DNA of 64,000 nucleotides, from assembly GCA_015680685.1 (NCBI GenBank), contig MNCI01000405.1:540521-604520 (forward strand). The letters are read 5' to 3'. The notes under the pieces were generated by a model. The model ran no database searches, was not told the origin of the DNA, and saw nothing but the letters and a program-made list of their open reading frames with translations. A program made the position numbers and the translations under genes. The stretch is from Gnetum montanum (lineage: Eukaryota > Plantae > Gnetophyta). Below are positions 23,981-62,300 of the stretch, one piece after another (position 1 is the first letter of the stretch; each line of letters opens with the position of its first letter).

Positions 23981-25505
23981 TTAAAGGTTATTTTTAAGAG
24001 CTAAGACATCTAATGGATTATTGTTATGTAATTCATCAGTTATGAGATAAGTTGGGTCACTTAGCTCTACAATTTCATCTTCTCTAGGTTCCTTAATTTG
24101 ATGTTGATGATATAACTTAAGTCTTTGTCCATTGACTAAGAATGTAGTTGAGGAATCATCAATAGGTGATATGAGAATGCTTCCATTATCATGGGGTTGG
24201 ATAATTAAATAAGGGCCTTTCCACCTAGTTGTTAACTTTCTTCGAAATTTATGTAATCTCATATTGTAGAGACAAACTTTATCACCTATGGAAAAGTGTT
24301 TTTTAAAGATATTCTTATCATATAATATCTTCATTTTTTTCTTTAAAATTTTTTATTTGTCAAGAGCATGTAGCTGCATTTCATCAAGTTTGTGAAGTTG
24401 GTTGATTCAAGTGGCTTGGTTCATGTCTTCATCAAAGTTGAGTTGTTGGGCTAACTATAAAGATTGATATTTAAGTTTAATAGGTAATAGAAATAAATTA
24501 CCAAAAACCAATTGATAAGGTGAATATCCTAAACTTAGTTTATAGGCAATTTAATAAGCCCAAAGCTCATCTTGTAATTTTTTAGACCAGTCCTTTCCTT
24601 TAGCACATGAAGTTTTTGTAATATATTCAAGATAATTCTATTAGCATTCTCTACTTGGCCATTTGGTTGAGAATGATAGGCAGTAGCTATTTTATGTTGA
24701 ATACCACAAGACTTAAGGAATTTTTCCATGATTTTATTGACAAAATGGGTTCCTTGATCACTAATGATCACTCATGGAGTTCTAAAACATGTTAAAATAT
24801 TTTCTTTAAGGAATGCTACAACAACCTTAACATCATTTGTTGGGGTAGCTTTTACTTCTACCCATTTGGTGACATAGTCAATACAAACCAACATTTATTA
24901 ACATCCATTAGATGGTGGAAATGGTCCTAAAAAGTCTATATCCAACACATCAACTTGATTTGTTATTAAAATTGGTTTTAATGGCATTTCATGTCTTTTT
25001 GTTATGGCTCCCATTCGTTGACATTTATTACATTCTTGCACATACTTATGTGCATATTTAAAAATTGAGGGCCAATCAAATCCACTTTGAAGGATTTTGA
25101 TAGCAGTATATTTGCTATCAAAGTGGCCATCCCCTAAATCGTCATGGCACATTTATAGAATTTCTTATTGTTCATTCTCAGCCACACATCTCCTCCATAT
25201 GTTATTCTTATAAATTCGATAGAGATATGGACTACTCTAGATATACCTAGATATGGTGCGTAAGAAAGATTTCTTTTCTTCCTTAGTCCAGTTGGTAGGG
25301 TTTTCATAGTGGCTAGATAGTTGGCTATATAAGCAAACCAAGAATCCTTTCTTGTAGAAAAAGTTATTCATAAGGAAATTCATCATGAAAGACTCCTTGT
25401 GTTTAATTCTCATCAATAGTTTCTAGCCTTGAAAGATTATTTGCTACTACATTTTTCCTTCCTCTTTTATCTAAAATATCTACAATATCTAGGTGAAATT
25501 CTTGC
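23981..25505 (-). pseudogene. Element C integrase pseudogene (with end of RNase H)
   Basis: CH...GDGHF...KILQSGFDWPSIFK...CNKCQR, IDFLGPFP, IISDQGTHF, AYHSQPNGQVENANR, WKGPY. Confidence 0.92.
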
Positions 25506-28182: not shown

Positions 28183-29652
28183 TGATGACTAGTCGAGGTA
28201 TCCCAACACTTTACCATACAAGTTACGAGTGTCTGCACATGACCAAATCATATCTATGGATGGACAATGTAATTATGTTAGTAATTGAGAGTAAGTTCAA
28301 GATTGTTGTCTTTCCACTTTGAGTTAGTAAAGTTTGAGTGTATGGTTTAATTCTTAGTGAGGCATCAAATTGATTGATGTTGTAAGGCTCTTAACATTCC
28401 TAATGGTAAGCATGATTGAGTGAAAATAAAATTCTAAGTCTCGTAAATTATGAAAATACAAATCTATCTTAGCCTAAAGCAATGGATATCTAGTCCTAGT
28501 CTACTATACATGCCTTGGACTCATGTAGTTATCATTGGAATTATCGAGTGGAATTACTACTGAGTGAACAAGCAACACCATTACTAGGTTACCGGATAAC
28601 TATACTTAGCAATCAAAACCTATCACATCCCCATTCCCAAATGGTGTTGTTTCCTAATGAAGATGGTGTCTCTTCATAACAAGTGTTATTGTTATCTTAA
28701 CAAGACCTGAAAGTGTAGTTGTAATTAAGACTTAAAAGGGCATATTGTAATAACAAACATGTCTCTTAAGGTAACCTTTGGGGGTTTGACCTAAGGCATT
28801 TATACCTGGGGTTAGAGGTCATGCCTGCATGGAGTGGTAGAGCTAGTACAAGGAAGTCACAGGAAGCTAGGTCAAGTGAGATAGGAAGTGGATTGGCCAT
28901 CCCTTCTAGTCAAGTTATAGGCTTAACCATGGTGGCAATGCTGGATTGCCTCTAAGGGATAGATTCCAAAGGAAGAAAAATCCCAAGGAACACTCTTGGA
29001 GCACAATATGGATGCGCTATTTCATATCAATAAAGCAATTTTTCTTTCTCTTTCTACATTTTCCCTAATATTTCCTTTATACATAATGTTGAATATCACA
29101 TATATTTCATAGTTGGCATATTTTCTTCATACGCATAATGTCTAATATATTGTATATTTGACGTTTTCTAGGACATCCAGGGATGGGATGTCACAAAACC
29201 AATCATATCCATTCTACTTACTAATAACATGTAAAATAAAGTGCTTGAAATGTAAATGATTAACTAAGAAAGCAAGAAAATTAGTCTAAGTAAACATAGA
29301 AAAAACTAAGGAATGTTACAATGATGAGAAATAGCTTTGATCTTTATTTTCACACATAAACTATGTCCAAGTATAATTTACTCAAATAAAGATTTTGGTT
29401 GACTACTTAACACCACACTGTAGGCATTCACTCTATCATTAAAACTATGAAATGAAACTACAAGATTTTGACTAAGTTTTGGAATGAAAATTTGTTGATT
29501 GTATGCCCAAGTTCTAGTATTTATAGGGCTACATAGATCTTGAGACATTGCATCAACCATGACATAGGATGAGCTATGACATCATAGATACAATATCATT
29601 GATACGATATCATAGTTACAATATTGAAATGGTGAAAATTTTTGTTTTATTA
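28183..29652 (-). repeat. Element B 5' LTR, interrupted by a solo LTR
   Basis: Matches 9401-10284 on both sides of the 28621-29195 insertion. Confidence 0.9.
28621..29195 (+). mobile_element. Solo LTR of the element F family
   Basis: T(A)TCACA...TCACA termini and a perfect TSD AAACC (28616-28620, 29196-29200). It is the reverse complement homologue of 33492-34048 and 43909-44481. TATA-like TTTATA at ~28799 and AATAAA at ~29029. Confidence 0.9.
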
Positions 29653-32742: not shown

Positions 32743-33491
32743 AACTTGAATCCATATTATTCTTGATTTGGGGCACATGAATCAACACCAAATTTCATTT
32801 TTTAGATTGTAACAACTTATCAATATGTGTATTTGCAAGGTGTAGCCTCCTAGGTGATCTATGACCTCATTTAAGTTGCATCACCATTACAATACTAAAT
32901 ATAGGCTAGTTTTTTCCATAAAAATCAAATTTTCATCAACTGTGAGCTACTTTGGATCATATTGTGCTCACATTACCATATTGTAACTGACTACAAGTTG
33001 CGACAAGTCAAAATTATCTAAGACTATTTGATGTTCAAGAATGAATGTTGAAAGTAATATAAATATTGCTAGACTAAGACCATATTCCCTACCAATAATT
33101 CATTTATTGATTTTTCAAAGCATTAATTTTAACATTGTGCACATGAGTAAATATCTCTAAAATTAAAATTTTTTCCTTTCTATATATTTTTTGATACTCA
33201 ATGTTAAGTATGTAATGTACTTTGAATTTTTTTCTTATTATTAATATTTTTTGTGGCTAAACAGCTCCTCGTACAAAATTTTATAATGTCACGAAAGATA
33301 AAACATGGTTTCATGTAGGAAACAAATGACTTCATATTCTAAAAAATGAATTCAAAAATAGAATATTAAAAAAATATAAATTTAAAAATCAAGAAACTTA
33401 GAAAAATAATTTAAAAGAAAAATCTTGACACTTAAATCTGAGAAAGATTCTTAATGTAAAAGTCCACTTATATGTCATACTATATCTCTAT

Positions 33492-34048
33492 TTTGATATC
33501 CCATTCCCAGATGTTATGGAAAATTTTAAATATACATTATATTAGATATTAGGTATAAGAAGACAACATAGCAAATGCCAAATATATGTAACATTTGACA
33601 TTGAGCATAAAGAAAATAACATGGAAAATGCAAAAGGAAATATGAAAGAATGCTTTATTGATTTAGAATAATGTATCTAGATCATGCTCTAGGTGTTCCT
33701 TGGGATTTTCTTCCTTTGGCATCTATCCCTTAGAGGTAATCTAGCACTACCACCATGGTTAGGCCTATCACTGGCTAGAAGGAATCGGGAATCCTCTTCC
33801 TATCTTGCTTCACCTAGCACACATTACTCACCTTTACTAGCTTTAGAACTCCATGCTAATATGACCTCTAATGCATGTGTATAAATACCTTAGGTCAAAT
33901 TCCCAAAGGTCACCTCAAGAGACATGTCCGTTATTACAACATGCCCTTTTGGGTCTTAATTACAAGTGCACCTTTTTGGTCTTGTTATACTAATCTTAGG
34001 ATTGGTTATGAGGAGACACCATCTTCGTTATGCAACGATGACATTACA
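33492..34048 (-). repeat. Element F 3' LTR
   Basis: Colinear with 43909-44481 and ends ATTACA next to the PPT. Confidence 0.9.
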
Positions 34049-34515
34049 ATCTACCTCCTTTAGGATTCCTTCATCCTCAAACAAGTCCATGTTCACTATC
34101 TTTTGCTAGCTCCAATTCTTCTTTTATGCTCCTACGCTTATATACTTTGATTTTTCCTTTGGACTTAAAGTTATATATTCTAAAGTTATCTTGCTTATTC
34201 TATAAGAAAAATATATGTAAGAAGAATATATGGGAATTTAAATATTACTTTATTAATACTTACCTCATTTTCTAAGATAATGACAAGAGGTGAATTAAAG
34301 GTCTACCAACCACCAATTACTAGTGTTAACCAAGGTCACACAAAGTGCAACTCATATCTAGTTATCCAAGTGAAGGTAGGGAAAATCCATATTCTCAACT
34401 TGCATTGCCTTAGATATTTTACTTATCTAATTAAAATATAAATTAAACAATGGAGAAAATTATAAGATTATAAAATAAAATGATCTTGATAAACCTTAGG
34501 AATAAATGGAAATAA

Positions 34516-35577
34516 TTATAGTTCTATCATAAGTGATATATGATCAGATGGTCTTGTTCGGGACAGAAGGACTTGATCATGCTTATTCTCAACTTCTTCT
34601 TTAGAAATTAACTCTAGTAACTTGATAACTTGAAAGAATTAGACATTGTACCAAATATAATCTTGGGTCTCAATGAAGAAGGATGTTGATCCATCTTCAT
34701 TAATCATGGTAAAGTAATTACTAAACTATGATTCTACATCATTTTTTCATAAATTCTAGGATCTAATTTATCTATTAAAGATTCGAAGTATGCAAAATAT
34801 GCACTGGTCAATTGAATTGCATGTTGAATTTATGAGAACATCTTATTCCAATCAAGTGTGTCTTTCAAGTATTCCTTTACAAATCCATATTTTAAGACTT
34901 GATAAACACTAATTCCAACTTTCACATTAAAGTCTCCACAAAGGACAATTGGCACTAGATCGATATGTCTTAGGAATAACTTATTCTTCAAAATTTCCTC
35001 TATTTTTCAATCAAATATGCTTCTTAGCACACTCTAATGTCTAGACATGTTGATTTGGCAATTAAATGTGTGTTAGCCATGCATACACATCCTCCTAATA
35101 ACTCAATTTTTAGTATCATTGCCAAAGCTATGTGGCTTCTCTGGAACCTTTATCATTTTTCTTTCTCATGATTTGAATTTTTGGGATTCAAAAATAATCT
35201 CTTCTAAATTTCATTCAAATATTTGTACCAATCCAAACCTATCTTCTTTATAAAAGATTGCACAACCATCTATGTTGTGATTTTTGCAATAGGCTAATTT
35301 GTATGGCTCAAAAAAAGGGCTTCCACAATAACCTTTTTTGCTTATAAATACCTCTATATCCTATCTTTTCCAAGTTTAGTTGGAATTGGTATAGGAATTC
35401 CCATAGCAAGACTTTTTGTAGACACAAGATATCAACATTTAAATCTTGCAACTCTTATAAGATGTATGGGTATTAATACTCATGCCAATCCAAGGATCAT
35501 CATGGACATAGTAGATGTTTTTCTTCACTGGCTAGGGATCTTGCCAATACATTATATTTTACCATTTTTATTTTCAT
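34516..35577 (-). pseudogene. Intronless CCR4/nocturnin/Angel-family EEP deadenylase-like pseudogene
   Basis: Hand translation of the minus strand gives family motifs in order: VKYNVLA (~35542-35562), CP..SLDW, DILCLQ(K)V (~35411-35433), GYRGIYKQK, NIDGCAIFYKEDRF (~35238-35276), HIALAMIL, CMANTHL (~35063-35083), PIVLCGDFN (34926-34952), HAIQLTSAY, ETQDYIWY, KLLELI, RPSDHISLMIEL then stop (34516-34518). Several internal stops and frameshifts are present. Confidence 0.88.
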
Positions 35578-36305
35578 TCTTGGACTTTCTCTTGGGTCAT
35601 TTATCTTCATGGGTATTATATACCTTGTTGAAACAAGATTATAACTCTCAATGTTGTTTTACCAAATGATTTGGTTGCAAGGCAAATTGATATACATCTT
35701 CATGACTATTCTAGTTCATCAACTAATTCATTAACTAATTTTGGTTTGGTAACATTTCGCTTTATTATCTAACTCTAACCTTTCTACCCCTCCTTAAGAC
35801 ACTGACTCTGGAAATGTAACTAATAACACACTTGGGATTAGTAATCTATTATTATCTATCTATAAAGGCTAAGCTATTTAATCTTAAGGCCCAAGAGGTT
35901 AAATTTAGTAGTCTCAACGATTAAATTATTAGGCATGATTAGTTAGTCTAAGTTTTGGATTTTTAAGGCATAATTTAAGATATCATCAAATTATTAAGTA
36001 CATAGATGATAAATTTGACCTTTCAATTGAGATTAGAAGGCTGAAAAATATTAGAAATGGTCATTTAAATGTTAAAAATGGATATCATATGCCCAAGTTA
36101 TGCCAAAATTGAGCTTTTGAGGGTCTTGAGTCACTATGTTGGGGGAGTAAAAAGTAATTTTTGAAGTTCCATGGAGTATATCTAACTTTACCATTGTGTT
36201 AAAGAGGTTGAAATCTATAGAAAACAACTCTTTGTTTGCCAAAAAAAAGGCCTTTGAAATCAAAAGTTATGGCTTTTGAAGTTTAAAATTGTAAGCATAT
36301 AGAAT

Positions 36306-36393
36306 GGGACTTCCCAAGAAGTCATCCACTCCAATACTACTCCATAATAAGCATGCTTAATTACAGAATTTTTATCTCAATTGCTATTAGTGC
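36306..36393 (-). pseudogene. 5S rRNA-derived fragment (internal control region, A/IE/C boxes)
   Basis: The minus strand reads GCACTAATAGC...AATTCTGTAATTAAGCATGCTTATTATGGAGTAGTATTGGAGTGGATGACTTCTTGGGAAGTCCC, against plant 5S GCACTAATGC...AACTCCGCAGTTAAGCGTGCTTGGGCGAGAGTAGTACTAGGATGGGTGACCTCCTGGGAAGTCCT (recalled from memory). Both ends of the gene are missing. Confidence 0.8.
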
Positions 36394-36509
36394 ACAAAAT
36401 TCCTTTTTAACAAAATTTCCTCCATGTTTTACATTTAAATCAACTACCTATTTTCTTGATTTTTTTAAACTTTTCTGTTACAAGATAAAAAATTTTATGG
36501 TTGATGATA

Positions 36510-36812
36510 TGGTCTACGAAGCTTTGTGGTAGGTAGGCTTGGATAGTATCCATGGAGCTCCATGGGAGGTAGCCTTGGGTGATGTTTATAGAGCTCTATG
36601 GGAGGCAACCTTGGGGTTTGTCCTCGATGCTTTATGGAATGTAGCCTTGGGTGGTGTCTATGGAGCTCTATAGGAGGCAGACATAGGTAGTTTTCATGGT
36701 GTACAGTGTGCTCCATGGAAGGTAGCCTTGGATGGTGTCTATGGAGCTTCATGGAAGGTAGCCTTGGGCAGTGTGTATGGTGCTCTATTGGAGGTAGCCT
36801 TGGGTGGTATCC
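36510..36812. repeat. 36-bp minisatellite, about 8 degenerate units (GAGCTCCATGGGAGGTAGCCTTGGGTGGTGTCTATG-like)
   Basis: GGTAGCCTTGG recurs at about 36-bp spacing and produces the 12-aa HPRLPPIELH repeat in ORF 36495..36929. Confidence 0.88.
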
Positions 36813-37329
36813 CCAGTCTCCACAGTGCTCACGAACGTTGAAAATTGCCAAAATTTCCGATGGGTTTTTCGGTGAAGGTGAAGGCGAAGGTAGCAGCAAC
36901 GTCAGCGGTGATAGCGGCGGTGACAACAACTACAACAATGAAAATGTGGAAGAAACAATGGTAGAAAATGTAGAGAATAGCACAAATGGCTACCAAGAAT
37001 AGTAGTAGAGTTAAGTGATAGGCATCAACTAGGTGGCGGTAGTGTAGTGATGGCAAAGAAGGCATAGCAACGGAGTGGGAGGTGAAGGTTTGATTCTTGC
37101 TGGCATGGCCGCTCGGTTTAGAGCTGTAAACTAGAAAAGAAAACCTTAAAACCATATCCTTAATAGAGCCCAAAGTTGCAAGATGACCCCCCAGTCACTT
37201 GCAATAAGACAAAATCTTATTGCACCCCTTAGGACAAAAGCTAAAAAAAGAAATCAAAACAAGCAATTTCAAAAGAGAAACCAGTTAAGAAAAAGTAATA
37301 TTATTGGTAAAGCCTAGTTCTTAACATTG

Positions 37330-40300
37330 AAGTTGAATATTACTAGCAATAGATCATTTCATACCATAGTCAAATTTAGTGTAATTGGTGTTTTGATACT
37401 AGGAATCTAGACAACATTTCCAAATAAAGGAAATAATCTCAAATAAGAGGATTTTCCAAGCTTTTTGAAGGTGTTTCTTAACACAATCATCTTTGAAGAT
37501 ACATAGAGGGAAACCAACATAATGGTTAGGAAAAAAAAACTTGGAGAGGTTGACACAACTTCCAAATTTTTTGAGAGAATGAGCAATCCCAAAAGACATG
37601 CACAAAAGAGTCATTGGCTTGACAAATGGTGCATTTAGGGCAATCAACTACTAAGAAGTGAAGCCTATGTCCAATGGGAACACCTTGATGAATCAAGAAC
37701 CAAAAAAATAAATAGTGCTTAGGTGGGGCCCTGGAAGTCCAAACATGATGAAAAATAGCTTTCCAATGGTGATTCTTAAGATGAACACTACAACTTCTAT
37801 TTAAAGTGGAGAGTTGGAATTATTGCACATGAAATCAAGATTTGGCTTTAGAAAGGCATAAAAAATGCAAAGGGGAACCATAAAGACAAAACCAATCATC
37901 ATACCAAGGAGTATTATTATGCAACTTAGGAACACCAAAGTTGGAGAGAACATGCTCAATGTGCTGGTAAATAGGAGTATCTTATCTTTGAAACCCCCAT
38001 TGTACTTTGGCATGTTGCTAAGAAAGGGTAGTAGAATCATTCCTAATAGTAACTAATTGAGCAATTTGATGGATATTGTGATAAGCAAAATGATTGGCTC
38101 GATGAGAGAATTCATCATAAAGACAACGTAAAATATTTTTAAAAATAGGAGACCACCAAATGGAGTGCATCGACAAAGAGTTCAAGCTTATTTGGGAAGG
38201 TTTCCATTGCAAAAAGCCTTTAAGTTAACTCCAACACCGATAAATGTTCTTGAACAAGAAAGAACCTATAGTCTTCAGAGAACCTTTGCTAATGATCCAA
38301 TTACTCCAATGGGTGTTTTTCCATCTATGGTGATTACCAAGACAAGAAATGTTATGCCTAAAAAGGATCTTTCAAGCTTCATCTCCTTCTATATAGCAAG
38401 TGATCCACTTGGAGGCCAAGAGAATACTTTGATGCTCAATAGAGGCAAGGCATAAGCCCTCATGTTCCTTGCTTAAAGTCTAGATATCCAAAGCAACTTG
38501 ATGAAAAGCTTTGTGATTGTCCTTATTCCTTGATAAATAATTCCTAAGAATTTTGTTGATGCACTGAAAGGAAGATTTGGAAGGAGCCATCAAGGAAGAT
38601 TAGTACACATGAGTGGAGCTCAAAATATGATTAACTATAATAAATCTACTTGCAGTACATAAGGGTTTAGAAGTCCATTTCAAAGCTTTATGTTTTACTT
38701 TTTCCATCACATTATTCCATAAAGTAGTGGGAGTGGTGAATAAAGCAATCGGGATACCCAAAAGTGTCAAAACATCGATAGGAGAAAGCCACTTGATATT
38801 AAAATGATAAGTCCAAGTAGGCCTTGGGGAGAAGCTATACCAAATAGTTTGCATTTTGTTCTAATTGATTTTATCTCCTAAGGCTCTACAATATGTGTCA
38901 ATGCAATCCAAGGTGGTGTTAAAATTATTATGGTCCTCATGCAAAGTGAGAAAAGTGTCATCCACAAACTGGCTATAAATGAGATCCTTTCCTTCTTGTG
39001 GAAGAGAGATACCTCTTAGCCTCATAGATTCATTGTGAGATCTAATAATAGCTCCAAGAACATCAACAACTAGGATAAAAAGATAAGGAGCTAAAGGGCA
39101 TCCCTGTTGTACTGATTTTTGAAGCTCAATAATCTTAGAGAAGGTTTCGTTGATACAAATAGCTGAAGGGGCCTCTAAAAAAACCATATCAATATGTCTA
39201 TTAAAAATAGTACCTAAGTTATGATGTTTGACTATACTTCTTAAAAAGGACCAATTAAGCATGTCATAAGCTTGCAAAATTGAGCGTACGAAGAATGACA
39301 TTTTGATCTATGGAAGAAGCCTAAAGCAAGACCTCAATAGCATTAACAACATTGTCTAAAATATATCTACCTTGAACAAAACCAATTTGCTCTTTGCTTA
39401 TGAGATGAGGAAGAAAAGGTTTTAATTTATTAGCTATAGCTTTAGCAACAATTTTATAGATAACATTTACAAGAAATAGGGCACTAGTTGCTAATGCACA
39501 TATGATCTCCTAACTTGGGCAGAAGCTTAATAATACTGGCATTGATCAATTTGTCAAAGGAACCTTTCCTAAGAGCTTTCTTATACACACTATACATAGT
39601 ATCTTGAAGAGTAAGCTAGAATTTCTTGAAAAATTTTGTAGGAAGGCCATCCATACCAGGGGCTTTGCCATCATGGAGTTGTTGAAGAGCTTTACCAAGA
39701 TCCTATTTAGAAAGTAGAGAAGCATCACCAAAGATAGAATGATTAAAAGAAGTAATAACTCCTAAGCAGCTATTAACTGTAGTGGGATCAATAGCTTCTT
39801 TTTGAAAAATTCGAGAGTAGAACTCAAAGAAAGCCTATAGAATGTTAGTCTTGGAGGTAAAGATATTATCATCGACTTGAATAGTTGAGATTTTAGGGGA
39901 CAAGTGTCTCCCTTTGAGGAGATGAAAAAATCCTTTAGTAGCCTGGTCACCCATGTGGAGCCAGGAAAGATGGGTGCAAATGTGAGCACCTCTAACTTCA
40001 TGGTGATCCATTATACACATGTTCTCCTTGGGAATTTGCAAGCTATAGAATTGAGCCCTAGTAGCTTCAGCTCTATTAATGACATTTTGTAATAAGAAGA
40101 TTTCCTTATGAAGGTTGGACTTATGAGAATTTAGTCTTGAAGCAACCAATTTACCTACATGTTTGGAAAACCACCAGGGGCAAGTACAAGCATTAGTACA
40201 CCAATCAATTCAACTGTCTTCTCCAAGGGGTTTAGGATATAGATTCCATATTGGCATCAATAAAGATCAAAAGGAGATACTATGAAGAAAGGTAGTGTTA

Positions 40301-41065
40301 AAAATATAAAGGTCATTAGAAGAGCAGGAGTAGCCACAGAGGAAATGAGACCAGTGAATAGGATAATGATCTAACAAAACTTGGGTATAATCTACCTAAA
40401 CAAGAGCACCATTTAAATTGAATAGAAGCATCTATAGATAGGTAAATCCAATTCAACATAGAAGAAGTGTAAGAGTTTCCATATCTAGCATTGCTCCAAG
40501 TAAACCAATTAGAAGTACAGAAGAGGGGTAGTTTCCATTAGCTTCTTGCAAATTCAATTTGTTCTTCAACAAAAGCTAAACAGAAAGCTCCCTATTATCT
40601 AAACCACCTCTCTATCCTCCAAATTTATCCTCTAGATGCCCAAAAATATTAAAGTCTCCTGTGATGATCCAATTAGCTGTAGGCAAGTTGTGCCTAAGCC
40701 AATTCCAAAAAAGCTTATGATAATTCAAATTACAAGGAGCATAAATGGAAATGATCACTAGGATTTCATTAGTGTACTATAATAAAACCCAATAACAATG
40801 CAAAAAAATTTTACAACTGTGATTAATAATAGACTCCTACCACTTATAGTGAAGAAGAATTATAGCTCCCCCTTTGCCCTGTTCATGGTGAGAGGAGATA
40901 TAATAACTATTGGGAAAAATACTCTTACAATAGGTTTGAAGATGAAATCCTTGAATTTTAACTTCTTGAATACAAACAACATTGAGGGAATGCCTATGAA
41001 TATAATCTTAGACTATATATCTTCTACGGGGATTCGAGAGTCCCCTAACATTCCATGAGCAACAC
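37330..41065 (-). pseudogene. LINE ORF2 (AP endonuclease - RT - zf-RVT)
   Basis: SWNVRG (~41050), CIQEVK, WIITGDFN (~40650-40672), KAPGMDG (~39650), QGCPLAPYLF and QFVDDT (ORF 38861..39301), CPIC...HVFWDC (~37585-37635). Confidence 0.92.
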
Positions 41066-41099
41066 TTCATTGTGTTTGTGAAGATGATGGAGGATCCCC

Positions 41100-42199
41100 C
41101 TCAACTACTAAAGCCTTAAAAGAATTCCTAGACTCAAAGCTATTTACTGAAGGATGATGAGCACTTGTTCTTCTACTAGTAGTCTAATTAGCATTAACAA
41201 AAATTGGGGATTGGTGCCCTTTAGGGAAATTTCTAAAGATAGGATTATCTCATGTGACTGAGGCATAAGATTTCTGGTAACTCACTCCTAGCCACTAGTC
41301 GGATCTTTTGGGACCCCTTCCTGGTTAAGAGGAGTATTATAATATCAGTATCATCAATATTCATATCCTCTGCATCTGACATCTTGGGGTTTGAAGAAGA
41401 AGGATTAGCCAAGCACACCTTGACAATATCATTACCTATATCCTTAGATATATTTTTAACTTTTAATTCTTTACTAACCTATTCTACTAAAATTCTCTCA
41501 GCTTCAATCTTGGCCAATAATTTTGTACATTAAGCTTTTCAATGGTTAGGATTAAGACAATAATAACAATAGTTTGGAAGCATAGGATTTGAAATTTTTT
41601 TGAACAAAAGTCCTTTCCTTCACATTAAATTCTAGTGAGTCAAGACATGGCTTTTGCATATAAATTTTAACACACACTCACCAAGTTGGTCTTGGATGGA
41701 AACCTAAAAAGGACTCCATAACAATGGCCTCCCCAACCTGCATAGCAAGAATGTCAACATGGGGAGAAAAATGAGAAGGGAGCCCTAGAAATTCTATCCA
41801 AATTGGCAAAATACTTTTACTCTCTTTTTTAGGGTCAAAATCCTCCTTCCATGGTTGAAGCACTAAACAGGATCCATAGACATCCCAAATTGATTATTGT
41901 TTCACGAAATCTACCATAGCCTTGGTTTCAAAAGCAAAAAGAAAAAACCCTTTGGTGAGATTAGAAGCCAAGGTTAATCTAATGTTATGAGATTCCCAGA
42001 ATTTTTTGGCCCATTATTGAAAAACTGAAGTAGGAGGAATCCTGCCAATAAAAAATTTGATTGCATAAAGATGGTTAAAGGTTTGAACAATTTGATCAAA
42101 GATGTCTTCAGGGAAGTCAAACCATAGAATGTTGTCATTATCATCCATTTTAGTAGTATTCACTCCAACATCAAAAAATGAAGAGACAATTTGGGTCAT
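41100..42199 (-). pseudogene. LINE ORF1 (DUF4283-like + zinc knuckle)
   Basis: KGFFLF.F (~41935-41952), LQPWKEDFDP...PIWIEFLGLP (ORF 41678..41863), CYYCLNPNH (~41542-41568). Confidence 0.85.
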
Positions 42200-42769
42200 G
42201 TAGACTGCTTCAAGAAATCAGAGCAAAGAATGTATTAAGAAAAAGAAAAACAAAAAAAAAGGTACAGACTCACCAAGATGCTAGAAGAAAAATCCACAAC
42301 AAACTAGTATTTGTAGCAATAGATAATTCTTGGGGCCACTAGCTATCACAGTCCCCAACGCAACAATAAGAAACCCTACCGTTCACTAGAACTATGGACA
42401 AAAGTGAAGAAGAACCCTCAATCGTGACCTTGCAAACCCTACCATAGAACCAAAGCAACAAAACCCCAACAGCTAAATCCTCAAAGCTTTCACCAATTGT
42501 CCTTCATGTGGAAAAATCCTCAGAGTGGCAAAAACCCTCAAAGGTCAACCAACCTACAACAACAATGTCAGCAACATCCACTGACATGGATCACAAAGCT
42601 TCCACCCAAACACCATCAACCTCGCAAGCGCCGCTGTTCATAGATGAATTCATGAATGAGAACCTATACCTAGAAGTTGTGCAACCCACAAGGATTACAA
42701 TCAATCTATGCTAATCTCAATAATTATTTAAACATATAAGTAACTACCTCTATTTAAAAACACCGCATA

Positions 42770-42935
42770 ATCTGGTTGGCTTGTTAGGTGGGGCTTAAAA
42801 TTTAGGTTGGATAATTGATAAGTTACAACTTCAATCCCTAGTCCCTATCTATTAAAATTATTATTATTATTATCATTATTATTATTATTATAAATATTAT
42901 TATTTATTTTATTTAATTATTATTATTTTATCATG
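42770..42935 (+). repeat. Possible tRNA-derived SINE-like remnant followed by an (ATT)n microsatellite
   Basis: A-box-like TGGCTTGTTAGG (~42777), B-box-like CTTCAATCCC (~42829), then an imperfect (ATT)n tract at ~42857-42930. The microsatellite is certain and the SINE call is weak. Confidence 0.3.
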
Positions 42936-43908
42936 CCTAACAATCAACTTTAAATAACCTTATCTCTTAAATTGTAAGTTCAATCAGGACAAAATTTGTA
43001 CCATTGGAATCATCTCAACGAGTAATATGCATTAGACATGGTTTTAGGGTATGAAAACTAAGTTGTATTTTCATAATTTGAATGGCCCAAACTAAATTAT
43101 TTTGATGATTAATATCATTAGGTTGATGTATGGGTAACCTAATGACTTCTAGATGACTTATATTTTAACTATAAAGGATATACCAACCCTTGAACATGAA
43201 TATAATACTTTTACCTTATAATTTGGCAAGTATGATGTACGCTTGTTTTCTCGTATCATGACTATACCCTAGTGAGATACTAAGAAGAAGCAAGACATGA
43301 AAACATTACCCACCAAGTATTGGTTTTCCTATGAGTATCATGGTAATAACCCTTGGTTGAGTAGGAATGAAATAATCTTATAAATAGGTTGAATCCCTTA
43401 AAACTTACCAATGCATATTCCTTAAACCTACCGATACAACCTTTATGACTAGATTGAATCCATTAAATTTAATACATAGATCTTAGGTAAGATGAGTAAT
43501 GCCAAAATACAGGGCTTTGGTGCTTAGCATAATGAGTTTTAACAAGACAAGATCAACTTAGCTTATGGTTACTAACCTTTTAGGAGAAACTTGATAATGA
43601 TCTCAATTAATTAACATTTTATCATTAGTACAACATGGGTAAGAATTACTTTGACTAATGTATCTTTGTCTTACCAATGTCTTTTGCAATTGATGAATCT
43701 TGATGAGGAGTAATCAAATCTTCCTTGGTCAGGGATATCCATGAAACAATCTTCTTATTTGGTGGGCTAAGGATAATATTGAACATATGGTGCACCTAGT
43801 GGTAGTCCATGACTCTCTATGGGTCATGCCTTCATGGTTTATCATTGGATTGTAGTCGACCCTTTCATTCTAATTGGCCCTTGGGTTATGGTTTACTCCA
43901 ATACCAAA

Positions 43909-44481
43909 TGTGACATCCCATTCCTATATGTTATGGAAAACATCAAATATACATTATATTATACATTAGGCATAAGAAGAAAACATAGCAAATGCCGAAT
44001 ATGTGTAACATTTGACATTAAGTGTAAAGAGAGTAACAAGGAAAATGTAGATGAAAAGAGGAAAGAATGTTGTATTGATATAGAATAATATATTTGGATC
44101 ATGCTCTAGGTGTTTCTTGGGTCTTTCTTCCTTTGGCATCTATCCCTTAGAGGCAATCCAACACCACCACCATCGCTAGGCCTATCATTGGCCAAAAGGG
44201 ATGGATAATCCTCTTTATGTTCTACTTCACTTGGCACCTATTACTCACCTATACCATCTCTACAACTCCATGCTAATATGACCTCTAATGCCCATGTATA
44301 ACTACCTTAGGTCAAACCCCCAAAGATTACATTGAGAGATATGTCCATTATTACAACACATCCATTTGGATCTTAATTACAACTACCCCTTTCGGGTCTT
44401 GTTATACTAATCTTAGGATTAGTTATGAGAAGACACCATCTTCATTATGCAATGACACCATTTGGAAACAAGGACATTACA
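43909..44481 (-). repeat. Element F 5' LTR
   Basis: TGTGACA...ATTACA termini, adjacent to the PBS. Confidence 0.92.
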
Positions 44482-44904
44482 TTTATTAAGATAGAATGGT
44501 GGATTAATCTTTTAAGACCATAATGCATATGTAGATTCTATCCATAACTAGTAGTGGAAGATGAAGACATGGCTTTATGAAAAAATTCAATTTTTAAAAA
44601 ATTTATTTAAACTTAAATATGACATTTAAGCAAGAGATTTTTTATAATTTTTCAAGTTCGAATTATCAACCTTTGGGCACTTCTTTAATGAGGTTTTTAA
44701 GACTTTCCAATAATATATTAAAACTTTGTAAATCCTTTTTTGTTTATACTATAGACTCTTTTGAGGATTTTCTAAAATGCAATAAATCATTTTCATTCTA
44801 TATTTATTACCAAACTCAATTCACATCAATGTTTTTTAAGAGAAATATACTTATATTATATCATATGAAATCAACTCAAACTAGGAAAAACATTACATAG
44901 CTAC

Positions 44905-45774
44905 TGATGAGTGGCGAGGTACCCCTACACTCAACCATACGAATATGAGCGTTTCACGCACAATCCAGTCAAACTCCATAGACGAACTAGTTATGGTATC
45001 TAGATAGTTATTCATAGGTCACAGTTCGCTGTCTTCCCACCTAGAATAGTATTAGCTTTGTCACATATGGTTTAGTCCAGAGTGAGGTGTATGATGTGTT
45101 CCTACACTAATGCTACTCCTGGGTAGGATGGGAAATAGTATTAACTAAGCTAGGAGAGAGAGAGGGTGAGAGAGAATCTAAGCTAGCCTAAGTTCAATGA
45201 GCATCCATTCCTTAATCATCCATACACATCTTGGACCTCATGCATGACTACCACTGGGATTACCAAACGCATGGCCTAGGTACGCTACTGGGTTACCAAG
45301 TAGTTACACTTGAATGCTCGTGATTAAGTCGTACTCATTCCACATTACTAGGAGATAAGGGTAGAGAGATATTAACTAAGAAAGCAGTAAATAACAATTA
45401 AATAAATAAAAAATTAAGCTAAGTAGATGCTGCAATGATGAAGTAATCTTGATCTTTATTGCCAGTCATGTGCATGTCCAAGTACGTCACACTCAAATAA
45501 GGATGTCGTACAGTTACAATCACCACACTGTAGGCATGCACTGAGAGAAAAGGGTTGAGAGGGAAAACTAATGTACTAAAAACTTATTGAAAACTTAAAC
45601 TTAATAACTCTAAAAACTACCTACCATATTTTCCTACCTCTTATTTATAGATGAGCAGACAGGTTGTGATATCGCATACACGATATCTCGTCTAGGCTGT
45701 GATATTGTGTACGTGATATCGTGTATGCGATATCATGGCTACGATATCGCAGCTAACAAATTTATGACTCATCA
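44905..45774 (-). repeat. Element D 3' LTR
   Basis: TGATGAG...CTCATCA termini and high similarity to 50777-51646. Confidence 0.95.
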
Positions 45775-59362: not shown

Positions 59363-62300
59363 ATGAAAATATTTGACCCAGGAAGTCCTCGCATTTACTT
59401 GCAGATTGCTAAACATGAGCCATGCAAGGCTCTTCTTGATTTTGGTTCTAGTGTCAATCTCATCTTCCATGACATGTACAAAGCCTGGAACCTACCATCT
59501 CTCAAGAAGAGCACCATCCATTTAGAATTGATAGATCAATCAATCACTATTCCTTTGGAATTAGTCAAGGACATTATGACCATAGTTTGCAAGTGGTCCT
59601 ATCCTACCAATTTTCTGGTGATCAAGGTTGAAAACTGCAAAGGTGACTTTTCCATCATTATGGAAAGGGCTTCATTAAGCACAATAGATGTGCGTATGGG
59701 TATAAGGAACCTCTCCTTAGAAACCTCTAAGGAAAATAAATTTAGATGTTTATAGAAGAAGCGTATTCTATGTATCGCATAGAGTGATAATGGGTGCAAT
59801 TGTATGCAAAAGATCTAGTTCATCAAAAGTACATTTATTAAAGCATGTAGTCAGTGTGCACATGAACAAGGTATCCAAAGGTGTTTATACGTAGTAGCCA
59901 CAAAATAAGAGGGCATCCAGTGGCTAATAGTTGACTTTGATAATAGCACACTATGCATGGAACCAACTAAGAGCCTAACATGTGCTTATGCTGAAGGCAT
60001 GGATTAACTTGAGAAAGTTCATCACAAACTCTCTAATGATGAAGATGATGATACATGTTGGAGAGAGTTGGAAATCCTTGATAACTTTAAGCAAGAGGCA
60101 CTAGAGTTGAAAACTCTACCAACTAGCATGGAGTATGCATTTTTAAACAATGAAAAGATGATCATAATCAATGTCAAACTTGCTCCTGAACAAAAAGAAA
60201 AGTTGTTATAGGTTATTAACAAGTGGCCAATAGCCTTTACTTGGTCATATCCTAAGCTAACTAGAATTGATCTAAGGATATGCTAGCATCGCATTTACAC
60301 CAACCCAGCCATGAAGCTAAGAAGGTAGTTGCAAAGATGGCTAAACCCCAAATTGAAGTACATCATCAAGGAGGAAATAGAACAACTCCTTAAGGCAGGG
60401 TTCATCTATCCCATTGTGAAGAGTGAGTGGGATAGCCCAATCATAATTATGCTAAAGAAAGATGGCAAGTGGTAAGTCTGCACTGATTTTAGGCTGTTGA
60501 ATATGGGAAAATTTAAAGATCATTTTCCATTGTCATTTATGGATCAAGTACTGGACATCATATCTAGGTATTGCTATTATAACTAAATCCAAATTATGCT
60601 AGAAAATCAGGCCAAGACAACATTCACGTGTTCTTGGGGAGCTTTTGCATATCGTAAGATGCCATTTGATCTATTCAATGTTCCTACAACATTTCAAAGC
60701 TTAGTCCTTAGTATTTTCCAATAGTAGATTGGTAGCAAGGTAGAAGTCTTTATGGATGATTTCTCTACCTATGGAACTATGTTTGAGCAAGCCTTGAACT
60801 ACCTTGAGTAGGTATTAAAATGATGTGTTAAAAAAAACCTTAGGCTCAATTGGCAAAAAAGCCATCTAATGGTCTAGGAGGGCCTAGTGCTGGGCTACCG
60901 AATTTTACAAAAGGATATTGAGGTATACTTAGAGAAGATAAGGGTTATCCAAGGAATAACACATCAACCAGAGATAATTAAAGATGTTCAATCATTCCTT
61001 GGATACACTGGTTACTATTGACGATTCATAGAGAATTTCTCGAAGATCACAAATCCATTGGTTGAACTTATGAAGAAAGATGCTCCATTCATCTAAACTA
61101 AGAAATGTGAACATGCATTCCAATAACTAAAATACAAACTCATAGAAACTCTAATTCTATAGGCACTAGACTAGTTCAAACCATTCCACATAATGATGGA
61201 TGCCTATAATTATGTCTTGGAAGCTATGCTTATGCAGTTTGATGATAAGAAACATTAATATTACATCCACTACATGAGCTAAAGCATTATGGGTGCATAA
61301 TTGAATTACACCACAACTGAAAATGAATGAATGGCAATGGTGTATGCTCTTGAAAATTTTAGGTACTATGTACTTGGTTATAAGGTATTTTTGCACATAG
61401 ACCATAATTCCATCCACTTCTTAATGAATAAGGCAACAGTGACCCCTCGTATCATATAGTGGCTCATGATCTTCCAAAAATTTGATCTCTCAATGATAGA
61501 TTGGAAAGGAACTGCGAATGTGACCATTGACCATCTCTCTTAAATAAGATGGGATAACAAAGAGAAGGAGAGTTTTCTCTCTAATCAATTTTTAGATGAA
61601 CTCCTCTTTACAGGGGTGATAAATGACCAAGTGCACACATAAATGAAATGGTATGATGGCATCCTCACTTACCTTCTCACTCAAGAGATACCATAAGGTT
61701 TGGACTTTAGGAAGAAATAATATTTTCTTCATCAGGCAAAGTACTTCATGAAAATCAATGAATACCTTTACAAAGTGTGTGCCAATGATCTGGTTTTTTA
61801 GTATGTCCCTAATGCAGATCAACTACATGTTCTCTAGGATGCTCATGAAGGTCCTTGCAGAGGGAACTATGCAGGGAGGTGCATGGCCATAAAAATCTTG
61901 ATGGTAGGATATTATTGGCCTAAAATATTTAGGGATGCACACCAATTTGTCCAATCTTGTAAATGATGTCAACAAGATGGTGGGATGACCATGTGAATGG
62001 AGGATCCTCAATAGTGGATTCAACCACTAGAGCCCTTTGACATATGGGGCATTGACTTCATGGGTTCCATCACACCCATGTCCAATGGAAAGGTGTATAT
62101 CATCATAGTAGTTGACTACTACATAAAATGGGTAAAAGTAGCAGCTATCACTGATTGTACATCATCCACTACTACTAGATTTGTACAACAACATGTTGTA
62201 AATAGGTTTGGAATGCCACATGCACTAATTTCTAACAATGGACCTTACTTTACAGGTTCCACTTTTTGAAAAATTATGCAATGCTTGGGGGTTGAACATA

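Follow-up and report, generated by a model that had tools for sequence, protein, structure and literature searches.

A 64-kb window of genomic DNA from Gnetum montanum (contig MNCI01000405.1 of assembly GCA_015680685.1, positions 540,521 to 604,520), which is the whole stretch analyzed here, contains a long terminal repeat (LTR) retroelement at 33492-44481 on the minus strand. Between its LTRs the element carries an intronless pseudogene of the CCR4/nocturnin/Angel family, whose members belong to the endonuclease/exonuclease/phosphatase (EEP) superfamily. The element probably belongs to a non-autonomous LTR family of Ty1/copia-like type in which an mRNA of a host CCR4-type gene was transduced, and the present copy has decayed. 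A first-pass annotation of the same DNA had described an LTR retroelement whose sole recognizable gene is a CCR4-type EEP domain, and that description holds. No gag-pol signature accompanies the cargo, and the only reverse transcriptase is that of a long interspersed nuclear element (LINE) nested within the internal region.

LTRs and Integration Signals

The LTR pair is evident from an initial repeat search, which returned a 300-nt direct repeat with copies 10.4 kb apart, and alignment extends these copies to both LTRs. The 5' LTR (573 bp, minus strand) occupies 43909-44481 and runs from TGTAATGTCC to GGGATGTCACA. The 3' LTR (557 bp, minus strand) occupies 33492-34048, starts with TGTAATGTC, and ends with TCAAA where the other copies have TCACA; relative to the other two LTR copies in the window, 19 bp are deleted close to its own 5' end. 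In element sense, the LTR termini are thus TGTAATGTC at the start and GGGATGTCACA at the end, with TG..CA in the 5' LTR and TG..AA in the 3' LTR, a difference scored as a single transition. The two LTRs are direct repeats in the same orientation and are 84-86% identical (84% over 545 nt by BLAST, E=5e-170, and 84% over 543 aligned positions). Their Kimura two-parameter (K2P) distance is 0.187, reflecting 61 transitions and 27 transversions.

The third LTR copy, at 28621-29195 on the plus strand (28616-29200 with its target-site duplication, TSD), is a solo LTR that belongs to the same family. It is flanked by a perfect 5-bp TSD, AAACC, at 28616-28620 and 29196-29200, exactly at the aligned ends, and it is this agreement that fixes the LTR termini. 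The perfect duplication also shows that the LTR family integrates as a retrotransposon does, with 5-bp duplications. The solo LTR is 75-77% identical to the LTRs of the element and so belongs to a subfamily that is older or different.

The two flanks of the full element resemble each other without being identical. On the plus strand, tctat stands at 33487-33491 on the 3' side of the element (ATAGA in element sense) and tttat at 44482-44486 on its 5' side (ATAAA in element sense); four of the five positions agree, and the mismatch is a transition. Because about one change is expected per pair of 5-mers at 16% LTR divergence, these flanks fit a single integration.

Candidates for both priming signals are present. 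A primer-binding site (PBS) remnant, TGGTATTGGAGT, lies at 43895-43906 (minus strand), 2 nt past the 5' LTR. It agrees at 9 of 12 positions with the Met-initiator tRNA PBS sequence, TGGTATCAGAGC, and all three mismatches are transitions. The 64-kb window has no tRNA gene for comparison. A polypurine tract (PPT), AAAGGAGGTAGAT in element sense, lies at 34049-34061 (minus strand), directly upstream of the 3' LTR. The PBS remnant and the PPT both face inward, and each stands beside the correct LTR. Together, the Met-type PBS and the 5-bp TSD would point to a Ty1/copia-type partner.

Each of these features had been proposed in the first-pass annotation, and each was recovered: LTRs of about 560-570 bp, a 5-bp TSD differing by one transition, a Met PBS (here PBS-like, at 9/12), and a PPT (here a PPT-like purine run at the 3' LTR). 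The same annotation had considered that the two LTRs might be independent solo insertions, each with its own TSD. This objection does not apply: the termini are established from the third copy, the flanks match at 4/5 positions, and the PBS and PPT face inward.

A CCR4-type Cargo

The cargo occupies 34516-35610 on the minus strand, with an ATG at 35610 and a stop codon at 34518-34516. It is in the sense orientation of the element, with the 3' LTR about 470 bp downstream, and forms a contiguous frame of about 1.09 kb (roughly 364 codons) without introns. The first motif blocks are, in order, MVKYNVLA, LLCP..SLDW, NVDILCLQKV, GYRGIYK, and DGCAIFYKEDRF, and the later blocks, also in order, are CMANTHL, VPIVLCGDFNV, LTSAY, QDYIWY, and PSDHISL. 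These are the motif blocks of CCR4-type EEP enzymes such as CNOT6L, nocturnin, and Angel. Spacing bears on the type of EEP domain as well: 46 residues separate the catalytic Asn from the position of the catalytic Glu (now Lys) in the cargo, and this distance is 46 residues in CCR4 enzymes but about 29 in the APE-type endonucleases of LINEs.

Assignment to the CCR4 family is based on this motif reading and on sequence matches of three stop-free pieces to structures in the PDB, all of which are collinear with CCR4-family structures. The piece at 35311-35454 matches Angel2 residues 93-131 (E 0.49). The piece at 35214-35360 matches CNOT6L residues 99-139, nocturnin residues 87-130, and CNOT6 (E 0.003-0.008), and the piece at 34833-35006 matches yeast Ccr4 residues 589-622 (E 0.04) and Angel2 residues 228-253 (E 0.36). 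No PDB sequence match was obtained for the remaining stop-free cargo pieces. The ESM Atlas, used for leads only, returned clusters of short Streptophyta "hypothetical proteins" at the top, and its first named neighbors were EEP and nocturnin clusters with scores of 0.85-0.88. Separately, the piece at 35214-35360 (minus strand) gave a match to Clostridioides difficile toxin A with a whole-sequence E of 1.6e-5; it consists of weak CROP-repeat matches, none of them individually significant, and was set aside as chance.

The cargo is a pseudogene of the CCR4/nocturnin/Angel family and not an active member, because the catalytic Glu is Lys and the frame is interrupted by at least 10 premature stops and at least four frameshifts. 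The Glu to Lys replacement in DILCLQKV is a GAA>AAA transition. Other catalytic residues are kept in order, namely Asn (KYNVLA), Asp/Asn (LCGDFN), Asp (DYIW), and Asp-His (PSDHISL). These results bear out what had been noted at first reading: a sense-strand, intronless EEP domain (then put at about 1.06 kb) with the CCR4 motifs in order, a catalytic QE changed to QK through G>A, and a dead copy.

The surroundings of the cargo do not resemble the product of a separate LINE-mediated insertion. Downstream of the cargo stop codon there is no A-run, and a search around the cargo found no direct repeat as long as 11 bp or longer, which makes it unlike a LINE-made processed pseudogene that had inserted into the element. 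Within the 64-kb window, there is only one CCR4-like segment.

The Nested LINE and the Rest of the Internal Region

The recognizable coding part of an L1-type plant LINE lies at 37399-42199 on the minus strand, the strand of the element itself. It includes an ORF1 with a DUF4283 domain (41678-41863; Pfam E 7e-7), an APE endonuclease (about 40270-41070; weak PF14529 and PF03372 matches), an RVT_1 reverse transcriptase (38861-39301; Pfam E 4e-11), and a zf-RVT domain (37526-37696; Pfam E 4e-6), all on the minus strand. Since the LINE has an APE endonuclease of its own, the CCR4-like domain is a second, different EEP domain. The ends of the LINE are poorly marked: no poly(A) tail was found and no convincing TSD, the best candidate being AGGACAAAA at 37231/42986, which is unconvincing. 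Upstream of the LINE coding region, 42200-43894 (minus strand) comprises the LINE 5' untranslated region (UTR) followed by the non-coding 5' internal leader of the element, with the boundary somewhere between about 42700 and 42985. An AT-rich (ATT/ATA)n microsatellite at 42840-42930 lies close to the 5' boundary of the nested LINE or coincides with it.

On the other side of the LINE, the stretch at 35611-37398 includes a region of raised G+C content and a degenerate tandem array of 36-bp units, and it has no Pfam, Rfam, or Helitron signature. The array, at 36507-36847, has units with a 36-bp period that are 60-82% identical and lies in a block of 38-42% G+C. On the minus strand, it contains a 144-amino acid open frame rich in HHPRLPP repeats, which has no Pfam match. 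The whole stretch has no Rfam match and no further copy in the window, and three of its longer open reading frames (ORFs) have no Pfam family. This stretch could belong to the element itself, to the 3' end of the LINE, or to a further insertion.

A hairpin at 37200-37224, directly downstream of the LINE coding region, has a perfect 10-bp stem (TGCAATAAGA / TCTTATTGCA) and a 5-nt loop and is AT-rich. It may be a structure of the LINE 3' UTR, or it may be what gave rise to the earlier suspicion of a Helitron. The insertion had first been described as Helitron/LINE, and of this pair the LINE is confirmed by its DUF4283, RVT_1, zf-RVT, and APE domains. No evidence was found for the Helitron part: Helitron ends were not detected (the only hairpin in the stretch, that at 37200-37224, is not followed by CTRR), and the window has no other copy of this stretch.

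Without the LINE, the element measures about 5.2-5.7 kb and its internal region about 4-4.5 kb. The previous estimate of 2.4 kb for the internal region is therefore not upheld when the LINE alone is removed. The only reverse transcriptase between the LTRs is that of the nested LINE, as evidenced by the association of RVT_1 with zf-RVT and DUF4283. No gag/pol signature was found elsewhere inside the element, where three of the longer pieces of 35611-37398 were compared with Pfam and the rest was read as translations. A 5S rRNA-derived segment of the kind found in Cassandra elements is absent or unrecognizable: the window has no Rfam match that reaches the gathering score, and 33000-45000 has none even at E<=1.

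The remainder of the 64-kb window is rich in transposons and has no evident host gene. A 117-amino acid open frame at 23981-24334 (minus strand) contains WKGPYLI, a motif similar to the integrase C-terminus, and matches MLVIN_C weakly (E 0.009); a 130-amino acid open frame lies at 59363-59755 (plus strand). Both resemble what is left of further LTR retrotransposons.

Origin of the Cargo

The most likely origin of the cargo is retroviral-style transduction. As in maize Bs1, the reverse transcriptase would have switched templates between element RNA and the spliced mRNA of a host CCR4 homologue and so linked the two, and the cargo would then have been copied passively whenever an autonomous partner mobilized the element in trans. 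After integration (LTR K2P 0.187), an L1-type LINE entered the internal region, and the whole element decayed. The state of the cargo bears on when its coding capacity was lost. A rough, knowledge-based expectation is about 3-5 premature stops since insertion (K/2 about 0.09), and the at least 10 observed are about two to three times as many. The excess suggests that the source copy was perhaps already broken, and it hints, weakly, that by the time of this integration the cargo had become a passenger pseudogene.

Several observations weigh against transduction by a propagating family. The CCR4-bearing element is known here from one copy, and as no parent gene from the host was recovered, the suggestion of a host origin comes from the enzyme family. 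The TSD of the full element is imperfect and PBS agreement is just 9/12. The unassigned 1.8 kb at 35611-37398 leaves the structure before LINE insertion uncertain. None of eight stop-free cargo pieces, whose length of 28-58 amino acids is too small for Pfam, has a match there, PF03372 (Exo_endo_phos) included, and a HMMER search with the 58-amino acid piece against 1.84 billion representative proteins gave 0 matches at E<=0.001; the cargo must therefore be strongly diverged. Other searches were similarly blank. A homologue search with two cargo pieces gave no candidates under a length filter that left out full-length relatives, and seven ORFs of the window have no exact entry in the protein collection. 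A search of metagenome and viral contigs with the LTR pattern gave a single match (L001, 50% G+C), which has no similarity and is attributed to chance. The protein and DNA collections searched contain hardly any plant genomic DNA, and blank results from them mean little.

These blank searches are also part of the case for a simpler origin, in which a single retrocopy of a host CCR4 homologue inserted into, or was captured once by, an ordinary element of the large retrotransposon derivative (LARD) type and has evolved neutrally ever since, with no family to propagate it. Such a one-off event would account for a single CCR4-like segment in the window, for the heavy decay of the copy, and for the lack of related sequence in public protein or DNA collections. 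It is nevertheless unlikely, as neither poly(A) nor a TSD surrounds the cargo and the composition of the collections deprives their silence of most of its meaning. A LINE source is far less plausible still and can be considered highly improbable. According to this explanation, the EEP segment would be a fragment of a LINE endonuclease, or would have been brought in by the neighboring LINE through 3' transduction, and would not be LTR cargo. The LINE does lie 1.8 kb upstream on the same strand, and LINE endonucleases also belong to the EEP superfamily. However, the LINE retains its own APE endonuclease at 40270-41070 (PF14529, PF03372), the cargo pieces match CCR4, nocturnin, and Angel and not an L1 endonuclease, the DGCAIF and LCGDFN motifs, like the Asn-Glu spacing, are of the CCR4 type, and no poly(A) tail follows the cargo.

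A different question is whether the cargo was ever useful to its carrier. An LTR family might keep and spread a working deadenylase, of which the present copy would be an old, dead member, and the benefit could be the trimming of poly(A) from element or host RNAs, with effects on packaging or a dampening of RNA silencing. Retention of a whole catalytic domain with a plausible start codon and all motifs in order, as opposed to the fragments in Bs1, speaks in favor of such a family. Against this stand the at least 10 premature stops, where about 3-5 would be expected, which suggest a source copy that was apparently already broken. Moreover, most of the genes that LTR elements capture are passengers (PMC13317346). 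A functional cargo is accordingly rated improbable. Equally doubtful is the proposal that a high-copy, non-autonomous copia-type family has amplified a complete CCR4/Angel-type deadenylase gene, with some members intact, expressed, and under purifying selection. Nothing found here supports an enzyme that serves the element through mRNA stability or silencing, and for a dead copy the matter would be moot. Transduction of a host CCR4-type mRNA by a non-autonomous LTR family remains the favored reading, with the cargo most plausibly a passenger.

Relation to Known Systems

The cargo of an LTR retrotransposon is usually a gene fragment, and its copy number is low. LTR retrotransposons are known to take up spliced host sequence, as in rice, in sorghum, and in maize Bs1 (reviewed in PMC13317346), and LTR-mediated retroposition has been described in metazoans (PMC5131818). 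The mechanism of host-gene capture is already known, and the unusual part is the CCR4-type cargo. The first-pass annotation knew of no described LTR family with such a cargo, and none emerged from the literature, where no paper was found that ties an LTR retrotransposon to a CCR4, nocturnin, or deadenylase cargo; a paper on LARD expansion in the onion genome makes no mention of one (PMC13477061).

If the favored reading is true, a family that has carried the entire catalytic domain of a deadenylase to many sites would allow a clean natural test of whether the genes that transposons capture serve as tools or ride as passengers. Such a family would also be a warning for annotation, as the CCR4-like pseudogenes of this genome would then have to be read as transposon cargo and not as host paralogues. 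The copy examined is dead and contributes anatomy only; the value lies in the family. Should the functional reading be true instead, a transposon family would bring along an RNA-decay enzyme of its own. This would be an accessory gene of a new class for transposons, which might, for example, shorten the poly(A) of its own or host transcripts and allow escape from RDR6-dependent silencing.

As an enzyme, the cargo resembles CCR4, CNOT6L, nocturnin, Angel, and PDE12 in the order and spacing of its catalytic motifs, and these enzymes include the best matches of the three pieces. It differs from them in that the domain stands alone, without a leucine-rich repeat (LRR) or other N-terminal region, and is intronless and located inside a transposon. 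It is also inactivated by stops, frameshifts, and the Glu to Lys replacement and is too diverged for piecewise recognition by Pfam. With the APE-type endonucleases of LINEs it shares membership of the EEP superfamily and the GDFN and SDH-like motifs, which are common to both. The two are nonetheless distinguished by their Asn-Glu spacing, by the DGCAIF block that the APE domain lacks, and by their different PDB and Pfam neighbors.

As a transposon, the element resembles LARDs (Sukkula, Dasheng, and the abundant LARDs of onion, PMC13477061) in keeping LTRs and a putative PBS and PPT but no gag-pol, in having an internal region of a few kilobases, and in its presumed mobilization in trans. Whereas the internal region of LARDs is normally non-coding, here it holds a recognizable gene for a cellular-type enzyme. 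A closer parallel is provided by maize Bs1 and other gene-transducing plant LTR elements, which are likewise non-autonomous, lack pol, and carry spliced host-gene sequence in sense orientation. As in Bs1-type elements, the cargo was probably acquired by template switching and copied along with the element. Bs1 has three gene fragments fused in a chimeric ORF; in contrast, the Gnetum element carries the ORF of a single, complete CCR4-type EEP catalytic domain.

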